A stretch of 43,955 nt of DNA from NCBI RefSeq assembly GCF_001194135.2, contig NC_068985.1:66834653-66878607 (forward strand). The letters run 5' to 3'. How positions within the stretch are numbered: position 1 is the first letter of the stretch; every line of letters starts with the position of its first letter. Below are positions 9,292 to 23,185 of the stretch, piece by piece. Under the pieces are notes generated by a model, which saw nothing but the letters and a program-made list of their open reading frames with translations, was not told the DNA's origin and did not search any database. Both the position numbers and the translations under genes were made by a program. The stretch is from Octopus bimaculoides (Eukaryota).

Positions 9292-10269
9292 ACTATAACA
9301 AAAATATTAGTAGGAGAAGAGTTGGTGAGCACACACAGTAGTAAGGATGGAAGAAGAGCATATAGATAGAATTGTAATAAAGATGTAAGCGGCGGCTGGG
9401 AATCTGCCACCCAGACCTAGGAACAATTCAGTATAGATTGGATGAATAAGAGAAACGGAACGGGTAATATAGTACAGTACAATACAGCCAATTGCTAGAA
9501 CTCTAAACAGGATATAAGTGCATGACTCTACCATAATAAGGATAGATATGAAATTAAAATAGGAACTGGGAATAAGATAACAAACTGAGGAGTTTAGTAA
9601 GAAGAGATGAGGTTCAAATCTTAGTATAAAACCCGTGGAAGATAATGATAATAGCAAAGAATGATAATATATTGAAATATTACTGAATATATCAGTGAAG
9701 GAGCTTGAAAAGATTCCTAGGAGCAAGGATTTCTGGAGGGAGTTCCCTTAGCCCAATAAGGAGACACAGTAATAATATAAAATAGAATAATAGCAATGAT
9801 AACCTCCCAGGGGCAACAAAAATAATCTACCTATCGGGGATAATCACCAAAATAAAGAAACATCGAAAAATAAATTAATAATTAAATAAATAAATACATA
9901 AATAAATAAATAAAATAAATTAATCTAGTAGACATTCACAGGAGAGCGATAGCAATTGGAAAGATTAAGGAGTTACCTCTCCTGAATATAGTAAACAAAA
10001 TAAATGAAAGCAGCATGGCGGAGTTATAGTCAAGTATTTTGATAATCTGTTATGATCGTTAATTGTGTTAATTGTGTTTTTTCGTAATTTGTTCTGATGG
10101 AAGCCATTCCTGAGGAAGTGCCAAACGTCAGACATCCAACGGATCAGTCGCTGGATAGAGTTGGTCACAAAAATGTTGACATCGAATGGTAAATAATTAA
10201 ATAAATGGAATATAAATCGGTCTTGTTGTGAGTCTCTACATTTTTAAACATACAAATTTGAAACCTTGG

Positions 10270-10312
<43 letters not shown>

Positions 10313-11084
10313 NNNNNNNNNNNNNNNNNNNNNNNNNNNNNNNNNNNNNNNNNNNNNNNNNNNNNNNNNNNNNNNNNNNNNNNNNNNNNNNNNNNNNNNN
10401 NNNNNNNNNNNNNNNNNNNNNNNNNNNNNNNNNNNNNNNNNNNNNNNNNNNNNNNNNNNNNNNNNNNNNNNNNNNNNNNNNNNNNNNNNNNNNNNNNNNN
10501 NNNNNNNNNNNNNNNNNNNNNNNNNNNNNNNNNNNNNNNNNNNNNNNNNNNNNNNNNNNNNNNNNNNNNNNNNNNNNNNNNNNNNNNNNNNNNNNNNNNN
10601 NNNNNNNNNNNNNNNNNNNNNNNNNNNNNNNNNNNNNNNNNNNNNNNNNNNNNNNNNNNNNNNNNNNNNNNNNNNNNNNNNNNNNNNNNNNNNNNNNNNN
10701 NNNNNNNNNNNNNNNNNNNNNNNNNNNNNNNNNNNNNNNNNNNNNNNNNNNNNNNNNNNNNNNNNNNNNNNNNNNNNNNNNNNNNNNNNNNNNNNNNNNN
10801 NNNNNNNNNNNNNNNNNNNNNNNNNNNNNNNNNNNNNNNNNNNNNNNNNNNNNNNNNNNNNNNNNNNNNNNNNNNNNNNNNNNNNNNNNNNNNNNNNNNN
10901 NNNNNNNNNNNNNNNNNNNNNNNNNNNNNNNNNNNNNNNNNNNNNNNNNNNNNNNNNNNNNNNNNNNNNNNNNNNNNNNNNNNNNNNNNNNNNNNNNNNN
11001 NNNNNNNNNNNNNNNNNNNNNNNNNNNNNNNNNNNNNNNNNNNNNNNNNNNNNNNNNNNNNNNNNNNNNNNNNNNNNNNNNNNN

Positions 11085-11756
11085 GGTGGAATCGCCACCA
11101 AAAACACAAAAAAAAAGAAGAAAGGAAAAAAGAAGATAGGAGATGAGATAGAAGATACAGACATTAGAACTCAAGAAGTAGAGCAAGCAGCGAGTGAAGT
11201 AATTGAAGCCCAAAGGAAGAAACAAATGACCGAGTGGATAGATAAAGTGATAGAACGTATGGAATATTGTGAAAATGTAGAAAGACCCAGGCGACAGAAT
11301 TTGAGAAGGCTGGTGTTCCATGATAAAGGAACGGAGATAGAAAAACATTAGCTAAGATGAAAGGACTGGTGAGACCGAAAGGGGTAAAAATACGTTCAGT
11401 CCAGAGGAAAAAGCAGTGTTGATGGAGAAAGAAAGGATGGAAAAATTGAGAGTCCTTTCCGGACAATGGGAGAAAGTCGAAGGTATATGTGCGTTACGAA
11501 AGTCTACCAAACGTGGTAGATTTGACTCAACTAACGGAGTTCATAACGGACGAATTTTTCTTAAGATTAAATAACTCTATACAAGAACAGTAAAATAGAA
11601 CGGCGAGCTTTGGGGGTCTCGTAAACCATTACATCTTCTCATTATAAATATCACATTACATACTCATCATTCGTTATATGTACCCCACGTTTTGTGTTGT
11701 CTGTCCTTGTGGTGTCCATTCTTTGTAAGGGCTATATGCCCTGTAATAAAGAGAAT
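11085..11756 (+). pseudogene. Unit 1: 3' part of Gag-like ORF (stop 11591-11593) plus 3' UTR; 5' part lost in the gap
   Basis: VESPPKT..KKKKGKKK..TEWIDKVIERMEYCENVERPRRQNLRRLVFHDKG..KVYVRYESLPNVVDLTQLTEF, frameshifted. AATAAA at 11745-11750. Confidence 0.7.
11643..11750 (+). promoter_or_regulatory. Conserved TATA-like/Inr-like/AATAAA module in the 3' UTR (paralog 13543-13644)
   Basis: TATAAAT at 11643 and 13543; TCATTC at 11667 and 13563; a 63-nt core 61/63 identical (11664-11726 vs 13560-13622). Promoter function is inferred only. Confidence 0.4.
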
Positions 11757-12103
11757 AGTTGAGCAGACCTCTTCAGAATGGTGAGTTGTGAACATTGATT
11801 TTTGAAACTGTTATTGAAATTGTTGATATTGTCGTTGGAATCGATGTTTGAACTATTGTTGAATTTGTTTTTCCTACCCATTGTTGGACATGGAAACTGG
11901 CAGCTATGCTGCGGTGGCGGGCAAAGGCCCGGCACCCAACATATTGCATCTAAGGGAAGTTGAGACGGAAGGAAGAGATTTTAAGGAATACAAGGACTAA
12001 TTGTGAAGGTGGGAGACTGCCTCTCTTTAACACCACCAGCCAACGTGTTGTCTGTCCTTGTGGTGTCCATTCTTGTAAGGGCTATATGCCTGTAATAAAG
12101 ATA
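11757..12103 (+). pseudogene. Unit 2: 5' UTR plus ORF start (ATG 11890, METGSYAAVAGKG), broken at ~12044 and followed by a ~59-nt 3'-end segment
   Basis: 12045-12103 matches the unit 1 3' end (11694-11756) except two homopolymer indels and the last bases. AATAAA at 12094-12099. Confidence 0.7.
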
Positions 12104-13651
12104 AGACTTGACCAGAGTTCTTCAGAGTTGGTGTTTGCGAATTTTTGAGTTGGAGATAAGAGCGTAGAAAATTGAATTATTTTAAACCTTGTTGTTGAAA
12201 CTGTTGAAATTGTTATTGAAGCATTGTTATTATTTGTTGAACGTTTAAAAACTGTTATTGTACCCATTGTTGGGTATGCCAGCTGCAAGCTACCGGCGGC
12301 AGCAGCAGGCAAAAGCTTGTCTGCTGACCCGATGTGGCTAAGAGAAGTAGTAATTGAAAGGAAAAATTCGAAAAAATATCAGGAATATTTCAAGATTGCT
12401 TGAGGTTGACACCGCCAAAAAAAAAAAAAAAAAAAAATCCGTACCAAAGGCGGAGAAAGAGATAATCGTGTACTGAACGTTCAATGTGACAAACAAGAAA
12501 ATCCGTATAGCAGAAATAGAGGCAATTCAGGAGTGCATGTGCGAAGTAAAGGAGGTGACCACGTTCTACGCGCGAGAGAGAAAATATGGCACAGTGGAGG
12601 TAAGGTTTACAAGTGTAGAAGAAGCGAGAAGGTACTCCACTGTGCCCTTGAGAACAGTAGGTAGGCACTCTTGCCAACCTACTGTGGAAGACGAGCGGCA
12701 AGAATGAGAATTGGAAGAGCGCCCCCAGAAACAGACGCGGAATGGCTGGTAGCAGCCATAATATATAATTGCAAAGATGAAACAGAAATCATCAAAGTAG
12801 AGAAATACAGACATCAACTAGTATGTTACAATTGTAAGAGCAGAGGACACATGCAGGCAAAGTGTCCTCTAAGACAAATAAGAGAAGTATAGATGGAAGA
12901 CATAGTGGTGAGTGAAGAAGCAATGGTGGAAAAGGAAAAAAAGGAAGAAGAAAAAAGGTAGAAGAAACAGCGGCAGAAGGAAAGAGAGCACAAGTCGACT
13001 CACCGCCAAAATGCCCCAAGAAAAAGAAAGGAAAAAAAATGCAGCTGAGAATAAAGAAATCCAGAGAAACGAACTTCAGAACCTAAGCAAGCAGAGATTA
13101 ATGTAGAAAATGTAGCAAAAATGAAGAAAATTATGGAGTAGGAAAGAAAATTGGAAGGGCAGTTAGAATATGTAGTACAAACAGGAAGACCTAAAGGAAG
13201 TAAATTAAGAACGGTAATGTTTTACCAAAAAGAAATGGAATTAGAGAAGAAGATAGTGAAGATCAAAGGTTTAGTAAGAGTGAAATCGGTCCCAGAGATG
13301 TTTGAGACAAATCAAAAAGTGGTATTGGTGGAGAGGGATAGAGTGGAGAAGTTTTTAGAGTCGTTTCCAGATAAGATCACAGCAAGTCAAATATATGTTC
13401 GGTACGAAAATCTACCGAATGTAATTGGTTTGAAGGATGTGACCGAACAGATGAAGATGGCAACTGATAATAAACTGCTAAATAGAACTGTAAAATGAAG
13501 CTGCGAGTTTTGGGGGACTCGTAAGCCATTCCATTTTTTCATTATAAATATTTCCTTTTTCATCATTCGTTATATGTACCCCATGTTTTGTGTTGTCTGT
13601 CCTTGTAGTGTCCATTCTTTGTTCAGGCCTATGCCTATAATAAAGATAAAT
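12104..13651 (+). pseudogene. Unit 3: near-complete Gag-like element (ATG 12276, CCHC 12824-12865, stop 13496-13498)
   Basis: MPAASY.., KYGTVEVRFTSVEEA (RRM-like), CYNCKSRGHMQAKC, VDSPPKCPKKKKGKK, open C-terminal 115 aa ending IYVRYENLPNVIGL..TVK*. AATAAA at 13639-13644. Multiple frameshifts. Confidence 0.75.
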
Positions 13652-14900
13652 AGTTGAGTTGAGGTCGTTGTTGATAACGGAGTGTTTTTGTCGTAAGTCA
13701 GAGTGTTAAATATTTGTTTGCTGATTATTACTGTTCGAATTGTTGATATTGTTCTTCTGAATTGTTGGGTTTTTTTCTCTTCCCATTGGGGGGAATAATG
13801 GAGAAAACGCCAGTAGGTGACCACAGTTATGTGGCCGCAACTGGAAAAGGAATAGAAGAGGAAGCGTTGGAAATAATTGAAATTAAGGTAGAACCAAACA
13901 AAATGAAGGAATGTGAGATGTTGCTGGAGAAAGTTGGAGATACGTTAAAGTTAACGCTGCCTAGAGAACTGACAAGCAGTGTAATAAAAAGAACTGTGGT
14001 ATTCAAAACACGACAGTGGAGGAGATTGAGGAATGTTTGGAAAGTATAAAGAAACAAACAAAATTTATAACAAGAGGAAGGAAGTATGCCACTGTGGAAG
14101 TGCGCTTTGCAACAGAGGAAGAAGCAATTAAGCACTCCACGGAAGCAATAAGATCGGAAAGGTGGGTGCTTTTGCTTTCGTACTGTGGCAAAAGTGTGGA
14201 CAAAGAGCGAGTAGGCAAAGTGCCCCCAGAACTAAAAGAAACATGGCTGATGACAGCCATAATGTTCAACATGAAGGAGGAGGCCAAGATATTGAAGGCC
14301 ACAAGGGCACAAAGTATTCATTACTGGGGATACGGGCAACAACGTAAGATTTAATTAGAATCGTTGAGGAGATAGTGCTGCTCGACGAATTGAGATTAAG
14401 AGTGAAAAAGGGTGGGAAGGCCGCCTATATGTTTTGCATGTGGGGAGAAAGGCCACATGAAGGCGAGGTGCCCACAGAGAGAACAGACAGAGAAGCAGGA
14501 GAGCACGAACGAGGTAGTACAGATGGAAATGGAAGAAAATACAACGGAGGAGGGATTCACTGTGGTGGAAAGAAAAAGACGGAGAAGTGGAAGAGTGAGC
14601 CCACCACTAGAGAACCAGAAAAAGAAGAAAGAAGAGGTGGAAATTAAAGCTGCGACCAGAAAGGAAGGTAGACGAAGGGGTGGTGGAGAAAGAAAGCGAG
14701 AAGTTAATTGGAAAGGTGTTGGAGAAGGAGTTACAGAAGGAGGAAACAGTGTTAAAGACAGTGCTTGTCTTAGCGAAGGAAAAAGATTCGGGAGTGCAAC
14801 TATGCGAGGGTGAAATGGAGAGATTGTTCAGAGTTGAAAAGGAAAAGACACCAGAAATGGAAGAAAAAAAAGGAAAAACCAAGAAGAGGAAAAAATAAAT
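13652..14900 (+). pseudogene. Unit 4: 5' UTR plus Gag-like ORF (ATG 13798, CCHC 14430-14471), 3'-truncated
   Basis: MEKTPVGDHSYVAATGKG.., KYATVEVRFATEEEA, VGKVPPEL..WLMTAI, GRPPICFACGEKGHMKARCP, VSPPLENQKKKK. Frameshifted. Confidence 0.75.
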
Positions 14901-14947
14901 GGAATGTTGTGACATATGCAAAACACAAAGAGACGGAAAGAAAATTT

Positions 14948-15300
14948 GACAGCCATAATGTTTAACATGTAGGATGATACCAAGATATTGAAGGTCACAA
15001 GGGCACAAGGAATCAATTACTGGGGATACGGGACTGAGCTCACTATCCAGGCAACAATAGAAGACTTCAATGGAATTGTTGAGGACATAGTGCTGCCCGA
15101 CGACTTGAGATTGAGAGTGATAGTGGAGGGCAGGCCGCCTATATGTTTTGCATGTGGGGAAAAAGGCCACGAGAAGGTGAGGTGCCCACATAGAGAACAG
15201 ACGGAGAAGCGAGAGAGTGCAATCCAAGTAGTACAGGTGGAGATGGATGTAGAAACAGCGGAGGAGGGACAATGGGGAGATACAAGTAAACCGAACGAAA
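14948..15300 (+). pseudogene. Second copy of the central Gag region (CCHC 15144-15185), paralogous to ~14252-14560
   Basis: KVTRAQGINYWGYGTELTIQATIEDFNGIVEDIVLPDDLRLRVIVEGRPPICFACGEKGHEKVRCP. Confidence 0.75.
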
Positions 15301-15340
15301 ACAAACGTCCTATATATATATATATATCAGTTGAATATAA

Positions 15341-15775
15341 GGATAAAATATATCTCAGGTTTTATCACCTAGCCAGTGTGTAAAACCTATTGAGGTAAAG
15401 AATTAAATCTAAGTATATAATTTCTTAAAATACATTATTACATTAAGGGCTGTTAATATATATAAGTATAAAGACTTATGCATACCATACGAACACAACG
15501 TATACACAAAGCATACACAAAGGTTCACACTTATATATCTATAAAAATATTTCTATCCTGTTCATCTCAGCCACGTGTGTATAACCAAACTAATTCAGCA
15601 CTGAATATATTCCGGTTTTATATTTAAAGGATAAAATCTATCTAAGCGTGTAGCTTCTAGTAACAGCCCTTAATTTAATAATGTATTTTAAAAAAAATAT
15701 ATACTTAGTATTAATTTTTCATCTCAATTGGTTTGCACACTGGCTTCCATATGAAATCTTAGATAAATGTTGTCC
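15341..15775. repeat. Foldback/MITE-like: 115-bp imperfect inverted arms (15341-15455, 15661-15775)
   Basis: AGCCAGTGTG.AAA..ATTGAG..AATTAA..CTAAGTATATA..TTAAAATACATTATTA.ATTAAGGGCTGTTA is mirrored. A partial third copy lies at ~16126-16145. Confidence 0.75.
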
Positions 15776-18009
15776 ATATATTTAATTGATGAATATTATA
15801 CTGAAATATATTTAGTGCTGAATTATTTTGGTTATGCACACGTGACTGAGATGAACAGGATAGAAGTTTTTTTTTTATGGATATATAAGTGTGAACATTT
15901 GTATACGCTCTGTGGATACGTTGTGTTTGTAAATTTCTGGTTATGTTTGCACTGCCGAATGGAGAGCATGTTACAGCGCTGACCATGAAATCGTTTCGAT
16001 ATGCAACTGAAACTTTAAGAAAAAATATTTTTCTTCTTCCATTTCCTCGACATCAGCGCGTGTGTACATTTGATTAAATATTTTGACTTTAGAATTCCTC
16101 CCTAGCGTGTGGTTTTACTTATAGTAACAGCCCTTAATGTAATAAGAATAATACATACATACATACATACATACATACACACATACATACACACACACAG
16201 ACACACACACACATATATATATATGTATATATATATGTNNNNNNNNNNNNNNNNNNNNNNNNNNNNNNNNNNNNNNNNNNNNNNNNNNNNNNNNNNNNNN
16301 NNNNNNNNNNNNNNNNNNNNNNNNNNNNNNNNNNNNNNNNNNNNNNNNNNNNNNNNNNNNNNNNNNNNNNNNNNNNNNNNNNNNNNNNNNNNNNNNNNNN
16401 NNNNNNNNNNNNNNNNNNNNNNNNNNNNNNNNNNNNNNNNNNNNNNNNNNNNNNNNNNNNNNNNNNNNNNNNNNNNNNNNNNNNNNNNNNNNNNNNNNNN
16501 NNNNNNNNNNNNNNNNNNNNNNNNNATATATATATATATACATTTATATACATATGTATATGTATATATTGAAAGACATAGAGAAAGAGAAGTAGAAGTG
16601 ATGCATTTCCGCCAAGAACAGAGATGCATACGTTTAAACATATATCATGTATATATTCTTCATAATACACTAAAAATAAATAGATATTTTCGAAGATAGT
16701 AATGACAAATTATCCCTTTTTTTTACAGACACGTACGCACATACATAATGCACTCACATATATATGAATTTCGGTAAGAATATTATTTTCTTGGTGTATG
16801 TGTGTATGCATGTGTGAGCCTGTCTATGTGCGTGTGCGTGTGCGTCTGCGTCTGCGTGTGCGTTTCTTTGTGTGTGTGTGTGTGTATACAAATAGCTGTA
16901 TGTAAATGTGTGCTCCCTTATTGGTATATTTTAATGTGTATGGATGCTAGCTGTATCTGTATAAGTGTCCTTCTTTGTCATTTACCCTGTCGGTATATAC
17001 GTGTTAAGTGCATATTTGTGCGATTAAGTATATTCACAAATACATATGCGTGTTAGAAGGTACACAGTTACTCTGTTATAATGAAGCGACTGCTTCTAGC
17101 TATATACTGGGATATAAATGTCTCTGTAAATGCGGTTATGTCTGTGCGCGGTTAATTCAGTAAAACTTAGTGAAATTATTTCCGTATAGGAAGGTGAATA
17201 AGAAAGAAACAGATGACTTTTCATTGTACGTCGAATGTCCGCTTAGGCTTTGCGAACACACCATAAATTGAAGCGCCTCTGGGCAAGATGTAGAAATTAA
17301 GTATTGCTGTAAAACCGGCCGGAAGCTGGTTACGTGAAGCCTGACCAATACAGAATCGAATACCGTTGGATACTGCCATTATCATTATGAAGATATTCAC
17401 CTAGAATGAACATTTCTGTTAGAGAAATTCATCGACAAACCTACCGTGCGTATTCATCTAACTTCCTATAAACTGACACTGGGAGGTATTTTAATGTATG
17501 AGTACATCAGAGTAGGAAATGGAGAAGAATAGATGAATAAAAAAAGAAATATGCGAAAGGTCTGTATATTGTGTGTGTAAGTGAATGTACAATGATATAA
17601 ATTCTGTGCAATGCAGACAATACAGTATAAATATGAAAGGGAGTACTAGAAACATAACAGTGATGAAGAAAATGTTTTTGAGAGTACAAATATATTTATT
17701 GATGTTTTTTTTTTTATTTCTTAAAAGTGTAGTATAGGAGTTTTGCTGACAAGTTATGAGTGTTGAGAGGAGAAGAATGTTAGGAGAGTGTGTTCACACA
17801 GTGTCAACGGTGCATGTATTATCTGCTTGCACATGTAAATTCATGCCAATGCGTTTGTGTGAGTACGGATGTATAGCTGTATAACATAAAACAAGAATTT
17901 ACTATCCTGAGACTAAAACAATGTCGGTTGCAGGATAAGAATTAGAATCAAATACTGTGTATTTGAAATATGTACACTCACTCATGCACGCACGCACGCA
18001 AACACACGA

Positions 18010-22047: not shown

Positions 22048-23185
22048 GTTGAGTAAAATGTATGGAAACTTTTGAAATATGAAATAGCTCACAATATATG
22101 TCAGCAATGCGGAAATTTTATTCATCAAATTAAGTACCATTACAATCAATACACTTTTTCCAACGAGTTAGAAGTTTGTTTATTCCAGTAACATACAAAT
22201 CCAGAGTTCTGGAGCTGAGGAACTCTTTGAACACACTTTCAGAATCGGTTTGATTTTTGAATTCCCTCTCTCGCAGGAAACCATCAAGGTGCTTGGAAAA
22301 GAGATAGTTGGTAGTCTTGGGAATAAGCTGGGTGGGGAAGAATTTCGTAGCCAACTTCTCTCAACTTCTGGAGGGTCATTAGTGAAACGTGTGGTCGAGC
22401 ATTTTCACGGAGAATAATTGGTCCTCTTCTGTTGACCAGTCTTGGACGGAGGAGTAGCAATTTTTTGTTTATTTTGGCAATTTCATGGCAATACGTTTCT
22501 GCAGCAATGGTTTTCACGTATTTTAAGAACTTATACTGGATGAGCCCAGCAGTAAAACACAAAAGAGACACCATAACCTTATTTTTGATGAGCTCTGTTT
22601 TAGGGATGGTTTTCGGTGCTTCATTTTGGTCCAACCACTGCGATAAATGTTTTTTTTTTATTATTGTACAGAATCCACTTCTCATTGCAAGTTACAATAC
22701 AATCGAGAAATGGATCGGTCTCATTATGATTAAGAAGCGACGAGGAAATTTCGTATCTGAGCATTTTCTGATTTTCATTTAAATCGTGTGGTAGCCATTT
22801 GTCGAGCTTTTTTGATTGTCTGATGACATGCAAATGGTTGCAGGCAGTTTTCTAGCTAACTTGAAGTTTTTTGCCAGTTCCCAAGTGGTTTTATGTGGAT
22901 CTTTCTCAACGACGATCTTTAATTGACTGTCATCGCTAACAGATGGGCCTCCACTACGCTCACGATCTTCAAGGCTCAGGTTACCTCTGCGAAATCGTTT
23001 AAAGCATTTTCGAGGTAACCACTCACAAGTCCTTTCATCACCAAACTTTTCGTTGATATCGCGAGCAGTTTCATCAGCTTTACATCCTTTGTTGAAGATA
23101 TGAAACATTTAAAATAAAAAAGATAAAATTAACATATTTTTGTACATTACGAAGCATATATTTTAAACATAAGTTCCCTATATAT
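22044..23185 (-). mobile_element. Mariner (DD34D) transposon relic with near-full-length transposase pseudogene (22130-23108)
   Basis: FKRFRRGNLSLEDRERSGGP, KKLDKWLPHDL, IVTCNEKWILYNN, ILRENARPH, EILPHPAYS, GINKLLTRWKKCIDCNG. The left end TA-TTAGGTTG abuts (TA)n; the right TIR is degenerate. Confidence 0.92.

Follow-up and report, generated by a model that had tools for sequence, protein, structure and literature searches.

Introduction

HAL1 (half-L1), a non-autonomous derivative of mammalian L1, is a multi-copy, long-lived family that has kept the 5' region, a constrained first open reading frame (ORF1) and the 3' end of a long interspersed nuclear element (LINE) and has lost ORF2; its ORF1 protein (ORF1p) consists of coiled-coil, RRM and C-terminal domains. 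In the HeT-A/TART/TAHRE system of Drosophila, which belongs to the Jockey clade and is telomeric, head-to-tail arrays mix a Gag-only element with relatives that encode a reverse transcriptase (RT); HeT-A junctions carry oligo(A), and the neighbours are usually 5'-truncated. Here we analyze positions 11085-15300 of a 43,955-nucleotide stretch of Octopus bimaculoides DNA (assembly GCF_001194135.2, contig NC_068985.1, forward strand; the whole stretch is referred to as the window), which a first-pass annotation, made from the letters alone, had read as a head-to-tail array of Gag-only, RT-less units with a HeT-A/HAL1-like organization.

Stringent pairs of a LINE and a short interspersed nuclear element (SINE), such as UnaL2/UnaSINE1 of the eel (L2 clade), share a 3' stem-loop, and the L1/Tx1 group is usually considered 'relaxed'. 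Khazina and Weichenrieder reportedly described, in 2009, the 'type I' ORF1p of Tx1-clade and plant-type L1 elements as one or more RRM-like domains followed by a CCHC knuckle. SINEs and LINEs dominate octopus genomes, in which, to our knowledge, the pairing of SINEs with their LINE drivers is poorly worked out. R1 arrays and tandem dimers of elements that lack long terminal repeats (non-LTR elements), generated by double insertion, are head-to-tail and can expand (McGurk & Barbash 2018, PMC5932611). The octopus locus is best explained as a row of decayed, non-autonomous elements, standing head to tail, that probably descend from an L1/Tx1-like octopod LINE clade and lack ORF2; a literature search found no description of this octopod family or of its precise arrays.

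A five-piece array in one contig

Self-comparison and three-frame translation resolved 11085-15300 into five same-strand pieces (A-E) of one repeat family. The head-to-tail array is thereby confirmed as an observation, and the earlier count of at least four diverged units in one orientation holds. The pieces and their parts are as follows.

11085-11757, +: unit A (C-type subfamily), 3' part only; its left edge is an assembly gap
11085-11593, +: unit A ORF remnant, with lysine-rich tract and C-terminal block KVYVRYESLPNVVDL; stop at 11591-11593
11594-11757, +: unit A 3' untranslated region (3'UTR), ~165 nt; AATAAA at 11745
11694-11757, +: unit A structured 3' tail, with core TGTCTGTCCTTGTGGTGTCC, hairpin AGGGC/GCCCT and AATAAAG at 11745-11751
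12045-12106 and 13590-13652, +: tails equivalent to that of unit A
11758-12106, +: unit B, with complete 5' end GTTGAGCAG, 5'UTR, ATG at 11890 and ~50 codons (METGSYAAVAGKG..LTPPA)
12107-13652, +: unit C (C-type), the sole complete unit, 1.55 kb from 5' end to tail
12107-12275, +: unit C 5'UTR
12276-13498, +: unit C ORF remnant, ATG at 12276, several stops/frameshifts, CCHC knuckle at 12824-12865, stop at 13496-13498
13499-13652, +: unit C 3'UTR, hairpin at 13503-13521, AATAAA at 13639
13653-14946, +: unit D (D-type subfamily), 5'UTR at 13653-13797, ATG at 13798
about 14007-14336, +: RRM-like segments of the unit D ORF, which also has a CCHC knuckle at 14430-14471 and an acidic/lysine-rich tract
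14947-15300, +: unit E (D-type), internal fragment starting ..TGACAGCC.., with the second RRM-like domain and a knuckle at 15144-15185

Unit B is a mini-copy with an internal deletion, its coding part being joined at about 12043 to the final ~65 nt of the 3' tail (AATAAA at 12094). Unit D is truncated ahead of the C-terminal block and the 3'UTR. Unit E is 79% identical to 14251-14555 and is cut off on its right at a (TA)n run adjoining an inverted-repeat element. Stops or frameshifts break every unit, and the window copies are dead. The protein blocks of the unit layout that had been proposed as common to all, namely a SYAA start, a TVEVRF segment, a CX2CX4HX4C knuckle, an acidic tract, SPP-KKKK and a YVRYExLPNV block, align across units and with proteins of other loci, but only unit C is full length and none is intact. 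The 20-nt tail core TGTCTGTCCTTGTNGTGTCC occurs three times in the window, where shuffled sequences give an expectation of 0.00.

Thirteen runs of N make the window rich in gaps, and the run that ends at 11084 lies directly at the left edge of the array, so the array may continue further left. The gaps speak for a chimeric joining of repeat copies in a short-read assembly, but that the array is an artefact of this kind is very improbable. No N occurs from 11085 to 16238, so that all four window junctions lie within one uninterrupted contig; the units, at 68-79% identity, are too diverged for collapse or chimerism; and junctions of the same type recur in a HiFi-based O. vulgaris assembly as well as at a further two loci of O. 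bimaculoides.

A predicted RNA-binding ORF1 protein

The encoded protein opens with a SYAAA motif, continues with two conserved domains and the CCHC knuckle, and closes with an acidic/lysine-rich tract that precedes a C-terminal block; stitched translations of the units align over their full length with each other and with database proteins of other loci. A Pfam search with the composite ORF returned zf-CCHC alone (1e-4), with no sequence-level match to the Pfam ORF1 families, and a PDB sequence search returned nothing beyond the zinc knuckle. A first AlphaFold2 model, of the window D composite from 16 sequences, was discarded (predicted local distance difference test score, pLDDT, 54.5). The model used here is that of P0023, a family member related to the window copies, built from a 100-sequence alignment. 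Residues 20-240 of this model have pLDDT above 90, and its Foldseek matches are tandem-RRM proteins only (IMP3 RRM12 at 1.1e-4, Sxl, HuD and nucleolin). The ORF product is accordingly identified as a 'type I' LINE ORF1p of ~450 residues with two RRM-like domains and one CCHC knuckle. The structural matches bear out the RRM-like segment called by the first-pass annotation; its reading of the units as RT-less and as coding for a Gag-like protein in a layout resembling L1/Tx1-clade ORF1p is likewise supported, the product being of an RNA-binding kind. Compared with the Tx1- and plant-type L1 proteins, the octopod one has two RRM-like domains and an extra C-terminal block.

Word-indexed searches found family proteins from O. 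bimaculoides and O. sinensis only. An exhaustive profile search gave 706 cluster representatives, 172 of them at E≤1e-10; the ten matches that were looked up came from O. bimaculoides, O. sinensis, O. vulgaris and Argonauta hians, together with two ENA records. Family members are annotated in NCBI and UniProt as 'CCHC-type domain-containing protein', and this listing as genes, together with purifying selection on the ORF (see below), is what a cluster of tandemly duplicated, domesticated Gag/ZCCHC-like host genes would show. Such a cluster is nevertheless hardly credible: the window copies are all pseudogenes, copies are dispersed and flanked by target-site duplications (TSDs), the cluster representatives number in the hundreds, and the termini are held in common with an RT-encoding LINE and a SINE.

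Gene models P0005, P0006, P0030, P0093 and P0133 fuse ORF1 pieces to host-type domains, namely RGS, ISXO2-like transposase, WD40, LDL-receptor class A and astacin; these fused octopus models reflect either the exonisation of repeat fragments or chimeric annotation. For annotation, this means that several octopus 'CCHC-type domain-containing protein' entries and chimeric host-domain models are pieces of the ORF1 repeat.

Copies without ORF2 at other loci

Related copies were reached through annotated proteins, giving a sample of ~20 units at 9 loci (labelled L001 and so on; u denotes a unit and win the window). Among the 14 units with a readable 3' side, ten run from the ORF1 stop through a short 3'UTR to the tail within 150-500 nt (winA, winB, winC, L002u1, L002u2, L002u4, L005u1, L004, L003 and L009), and the other four carry ORF2. 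The ORF2-less architecture is found at the following loci outside the window.

L001, L002 and L005: O. bimaculoides
L003 and L004: O. sinensis, gapless
L009: O. vulgaris, HiFi-based

These copies are dispersed over several chromosomes of three Octopus species. Each unit is composed of the LINE 5'UTR, ORF1 and the last ~150-300 nt of the LINE 3'UTR. The copy at L009 has an intact ORF of 379 residues, the family 3'UTR and tail, and a flanking TSD of ~18 bp, with no ORF2 downstream of its ORF1. Solitary and first units begin at GTTGAG or AGGACG with unrelated DNA upstream (L002u1, L001u1, the first unit of L008, and L009). The earlier statement that the third unit (unit C), at 1.55 kb, leaves no room for ORF2 applies to all ten of these units; most homologues in the sample, which is small and biased, do not continue into an endonuclease-RT ORF.

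Autonomous LINE partners

An autonomous LINE sharing the 3' core had been suggested as something to look for, and two were found. At L008 (O. vulgaris, OX597840.1) each copy is laid out as 5'UTR, ORF1, ORF2 and 3'UTR. ORF2 is intact in copy 1 (1132 residues) and has one frame break in copy 2, and an assembly gap cuts copy 3. Against the family profile, L008 ORF1 scores E=1e-39 over 221 columns, and the L008 5'UTR is, as judged by eye, homologous to that of the ORF2-less units. The frame of L008 ORF1 shifts in the A-rich lysine tract, at different places in the two readable copies (about 10900-11030 and 16200-16340); these changes could be homopolymer sequencing errors or real lesions.

The second LINE, unit 5 of L002, comprises the N-terminal part of ORF1, an apurinic/apyrimidinic endonuclease (APE; Exo_endo_phos, 1.4e-10), the RT C-terminus, zf-RVT (PF13966, 1.6e-9) and the family tail. 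The CPRCG..H..HC motif of its C-terminus is also present in L008 ORF2. L006 holds a related ORF2, whose APE domain is 65% identical to that of the L002 LINE; its best PDB relative is human L1 ORF2p (4e-38, versus 1e-20 for R2), and the L1 endonuclease was matched as well. Because the closest solved relative of this ORF2 is human L1 ORF2p, we assign the clade to the L1/Tx1 group, and the units, judged by sequence comparison, would be derived from an L1/Tx1-like octopod LINE clade by loss of ORF2.

In keeping with L1/Tx1 membership, the autonomous partners have an N-terminal APE with a LINE-type RT and a C-terminal zf-RVT-type zinc-binding domain, and TSDs accompany L009 and a tail-sharing SINE. 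A poly(A) or A-rich 3' terminus, also typical of membership, was not found: copies end in AATAAAG plus 6-8 nt, both at junctions and at solitary ends. L1-Tx1 families of the RepeatMasker class have been reported to be active in O. vulgaris (PMC13282606); these could not be matched to the present family.

A structured 3' tail shared with a SINE

The last ~65 nt are alignable among the ORF1-only units, both LINEs and a tRNA-derived SINE. This tail consists of a TGTCTGTCC..CCCCTCT.TGT core, a 4-5 bp hairpin, AATAAAG and 6-8 nt. The hairpin lies just 5' of AATAAAG in every lineage, and its stem varies with pairing kept (GGGC/GCCC, GGC/GCC, TGGC/GCCA, CCTA/TAGG and CCCC/GGGT); this covariation was read from per-sequence folds, the MAFFT alignment of the tails having kept the hairpin arms out of register. 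The SINE, at L003 10437-10677 and about 470-695, ends in the LINE-clade tail (..TGTCTGTCCTTGTTTGTCCCCTCTATGTTTAGCCCCTTGTGGGTAGTAAAGAAATAG), and one of its copies interrupts an ORF1-only element, where it is flanked by a 13-bp TSD (GTTATGATGTTTC) and lacks poly(A). These sequence features suggest that the LINE clade drives the tRNA-derived SINE and that the tail may be a 3' element recognized by the clade's RT and exploited by non-autonomous passengers. Within 11085-15400 no Rfam family was matched at E up to 1, nor was any at the gathering score over the whole window, and a tRNA scan found nothing.

The likeness to UnaL2/UnaSINE1 lies in a conserved 3' tail with a covarying hairpin and no requirement for poly(A), shared in the octopods between a LINE, the element derived from it by deletion, and a tRNA-derived SINE; the difference is that the octopod ORF2 is L1/Tx1-like.

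A further hairpin, with a G-rich loop (U(U/A)UGGGG), directly follows the stop of ORF1 or ORF2. Its stems too vary by lineage with pairing kept (CGAGT/ACTCG, GCATGG/CCATGC and GCTCG/CGAGC), and it was located at these positions.

Window 11605-11622 and 13503-13521: post-stop hairpin, units A and C
L002 12866-12886: post-stop hairpin
L008 about 9495-9535: post-stop hairpin

Exact tail-to-head junctions

At the window junctions AATAAAG and 6-8 nt are followed by GTTGAG(C)AG, with homology unbroken across the boundary. Exact tail-to-head joins number eight and come from four arrays (the window, L002, L005 and L008). No poly(A), TSD or filler was seen inside these eight junctions, and at all eight the downstream neighbour has a complete 5' end. 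The joined neighbours may differ in subfamily or pair an autonomous with a non-autonomous member, and the first units of arrays start at the same 5' nucleotides as internal units. ORF1-only units and a LINE unit stand in one mixed array at L002. At L008 at least 2.8 full-length LINE copies follow one another head to tail with a period of 5273 bp and 99.4% mutual identity (HiFi-based assembly). Arrays are hence not a speciality of the Gag-only form.

Double insertion, that is, repeated insertion at one target site, or an L1-type insertion that hits the A-rich end of a copy already in place, could also place units head to tail. The end of a unit is indeed A-rich (AATAAAGAAAAC), and double insertion is a common origin of tandem non-LTR dimers in Drosophila, where the model predicts a TSD at the junction and mostly 5'-truncated downstream copies, joined tail to internal sequence (PMC5932611). 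The octopod joins are spacer-free, and 8/8 lead from a tail to a complete head with no extra bases, whether of a TSD or of poly(A); we regard this origin as unlikely.

The continuous homology over the junctions could alternatively mean that 3'UTR and 5'UTR together form a terminal repeat (U3-R-U5, or the pseudo-LTR of Penelope-like elements) around gag-only internal regions. A TATA-like motif, CATTATAAATAT (window 11638-11649 and 13538-13549), fits such a repeat, being conserved ~100 nt upstream of the unit 3' end with its AATAAA; A/T-rich counterparts occur in D-type units and both LINEs. Against an LTR-type or Penelope-like nature, the starts of first and solitary units coincide exactly with the 5' end, no part of the 3'UTR lying upstream, solitary copies stop at the tail with the TSD directly adjoining, the scans of array and window gave no hammerhead or other Rfam match, and the partner enzyme combines an APE with a LINE-type RT and zf-RVT and is not of the protease-RT-integrase or GIY-YIG kind. 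We give this interpretation very little credence.

Some joins are of other kinds. At L005 8472-10388 a 5'-truncated unit running from CAATAATG.. to the 3' end is followed by a unit running from the complete 5' end to ..GATGACAGCAA; the break points coincide with a 3-nt overlap, so that the pair amounts to one circularly permuted unit. The start of unit E in the window lies 5 nt upstream of the L005 break point. Stretches of 35-90 nt resembling the unit 5' end come after the tails of L004 and the L002 LINE.

The related arrays are interstitial (at 51.45 of 94.6 Mb, 28.1 of 58.2 Mb and 31.9 of 40.2 Mb), and related loci lie 0.9-51 Mb from chromosome ends. Of the idea of a non-autonomous family that builds arrays away from telomeres, the dispersal and the interstitial position are thus borne out, while the building of arrays by the family is inferred.

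Constraint and divergence

The ratio of nonsynonymous to synonymous substitution rates (dN/dS) was 0.25-0.51 in frame (10 pairs), versus 0.61-1.25 in six wrong-frame controls, so the ORF was needed along the lineages that yielded these copies. Constraint on the family and its spread are therefore upheld, the latter by copies in three Octopus species and by ORF1 homologues in Argonauta. Nucleotide identity is 68% between A and C and 79% between D and E, and the A/B/C and D/E subfamilies differ by about 30%. A rough neighbour-joining tree placed C and D together; the autonomous L008 ORF1 and a further ORF2-less lineage (L009/P0023) fell on other branches. Identity between units of one array is no higher than that with units on other chromosomes (L002u1-u2, 91.5%; L002u2b-L005u1, 97%; winA-winC, 68%), from which we conclude that local duplication does not account for the window and L002 arrays, though it might for the L008 array.

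These values bear on the simplest alternative, in which the units are ordinary dead-on-arrival LINE copies that lost ORF2 independently and came into tandem order by local duplication or unequal crossing-over. All window units are broken, B, D and E have deletions or truncations, and the near identity of the L008 units fits unequal exchange. We consider it quite unlikely nonetheless: the succession of ORF1 stop, short 3'UTR and tail recurs with the same boundary in at least 10 units on different chromosomes of three species, the intact 379-residue copy included; dN/dS is about 0.5 or less; and window neighbours differ by 21-32% and belong to different subfamilies, array mates being no closer than units of separate arrays.

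Neighbouring features

An inverted-repeat (foldback or MITE-like, that is, like a miniature inverted-repeat transposable element) element abuts unit E after the (TA)n run, and the L002 array is bracketed by inverted arms of a repeat that is also found ~3 kb upstream of the L005 array. Arrays may prefer to land at the latter repeat, or the association may be coincidental. A common inverted-repeat target for the window and L002 arrays was considered and rejected, the inverted repeat flanking the window array being not significantly similar to that of L002. Other ORFs were noted in the window and around the L001 copy.

Window 15301-15931: inverted-repeat element, arms 71-79% identical
L002 8427-9163 and 18158-18433: inverted ~270-bp arms, 89% identical
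L005 5358-5625: the same repeat as at L002
Window 22284-22685, -: ORF like the C-terminal part of a mariner-type transposase (..PHPAYSQDYQLSLFQ..)
L001 14850-15130: degenerate start of a third (LINE-type) ORF1 subfamily
L001 16200-17200, downstream of the L001 copy: ORF like the N-terminal region of a Helitron helicase-like protein

Discussion

The locus is an ordinary class of element in an unusual arrangement, a HAL1-like ORF1-only family present as a dead five-piece array. In the explanation that we favour, the clade's RT would recognize the structured tail, as in a 'stringent' LINE/SINE relationship, and copy ORF1-only RNAs in trans by target-primed reverse transcription, which fits because solitary copies carry TSDs. 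Arrays would be formed when the RT jumps from the 5' end of one RNA template to the tail of the next within a single integration event or, alternatively, by self-targeted insertion at resident 5' ends; array formation, by either route, is the least certain step. Template jumping would also explain the internal jumps in unit B and at the D/E join. Once formed, arrays may have propagated by unequal exchange or by re-copying of array segments.

Several observations weigh against the derivation from an L1/Tx1-like LINE or against this mechanism. A profile search found no significant homology between the C-terminal block and the C-terminus of L008 ORF1. The L1/Tx1 assignment is based on domain content and PDB similarity. 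Repeated deletion of ORF2 from constrained full-length masters would also yield dN/dS below 1. Sampling through annotated proteins is biased towards open frames, and the window and most of the O. bimaculoides loci belong to a gap-rich short-read assembly. The permuted L005 unit hints at a circular or multimeric intermediate, for which the template-jump model has no need. How arrays form is itself conjectural, and the L008 units could stem simply from unequal exchange.

The HAL1 part of the organization first proposed for this locus is apt. The octopod family likewise keeps the LINE 5' region, a constrained ORF1 and the 3' end without ORF2, is multi-copy and long-lived, and by analogy is presumably driven in trans by an autonomous partner. 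It differs from HAL1 in its RRM-plus-CCHC type of ORF1p, in a structured tail without poly(A) that is common to a tRNA-derived SINE, in frequent head-to-tail joins and in its cephalopod host. The HeT-A part survives as an analogy only: the arrays similarly mix Gag-only with RT-encoding members, and the 3'UTR TATA-like motif could in principle drive a downstream neighbour, but the octopod clade is L1-like, the related loci are interstitial, and the joins are exact and free of oligo(A).

A bolder proposal, which we put forward tentatively and think doubtful, is that RNAs of this octopod LINE clade are strung together while being reverse-transcribed, or that the clade targets the 5' ends of resident copies, and that it so produces interstitial HeT-A/TART-like arrays of Gag-only and RT-encoding partners with base-precise joins, in which the TATA-like motif might cause transcription of the downstream neighbour. 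If true, 'promoting in tandem' would have an independent instance away from telomeres, and LINEs a path towards satellite-like arrays. Tail-to-head joins across subfamilies and between autonomous and non-autonomous members are not explained by the usual double-insertion model; if confirmed genome-wide, they would point to template jumping or self-homing as seeding LINE tandem arrays. With one structured tail linking an RT-encoding L1/Tx1-like LINE, an ORF1-only parasite and a tRNA-derived SINE, the octopod family offers a testable driver-passenger triad.

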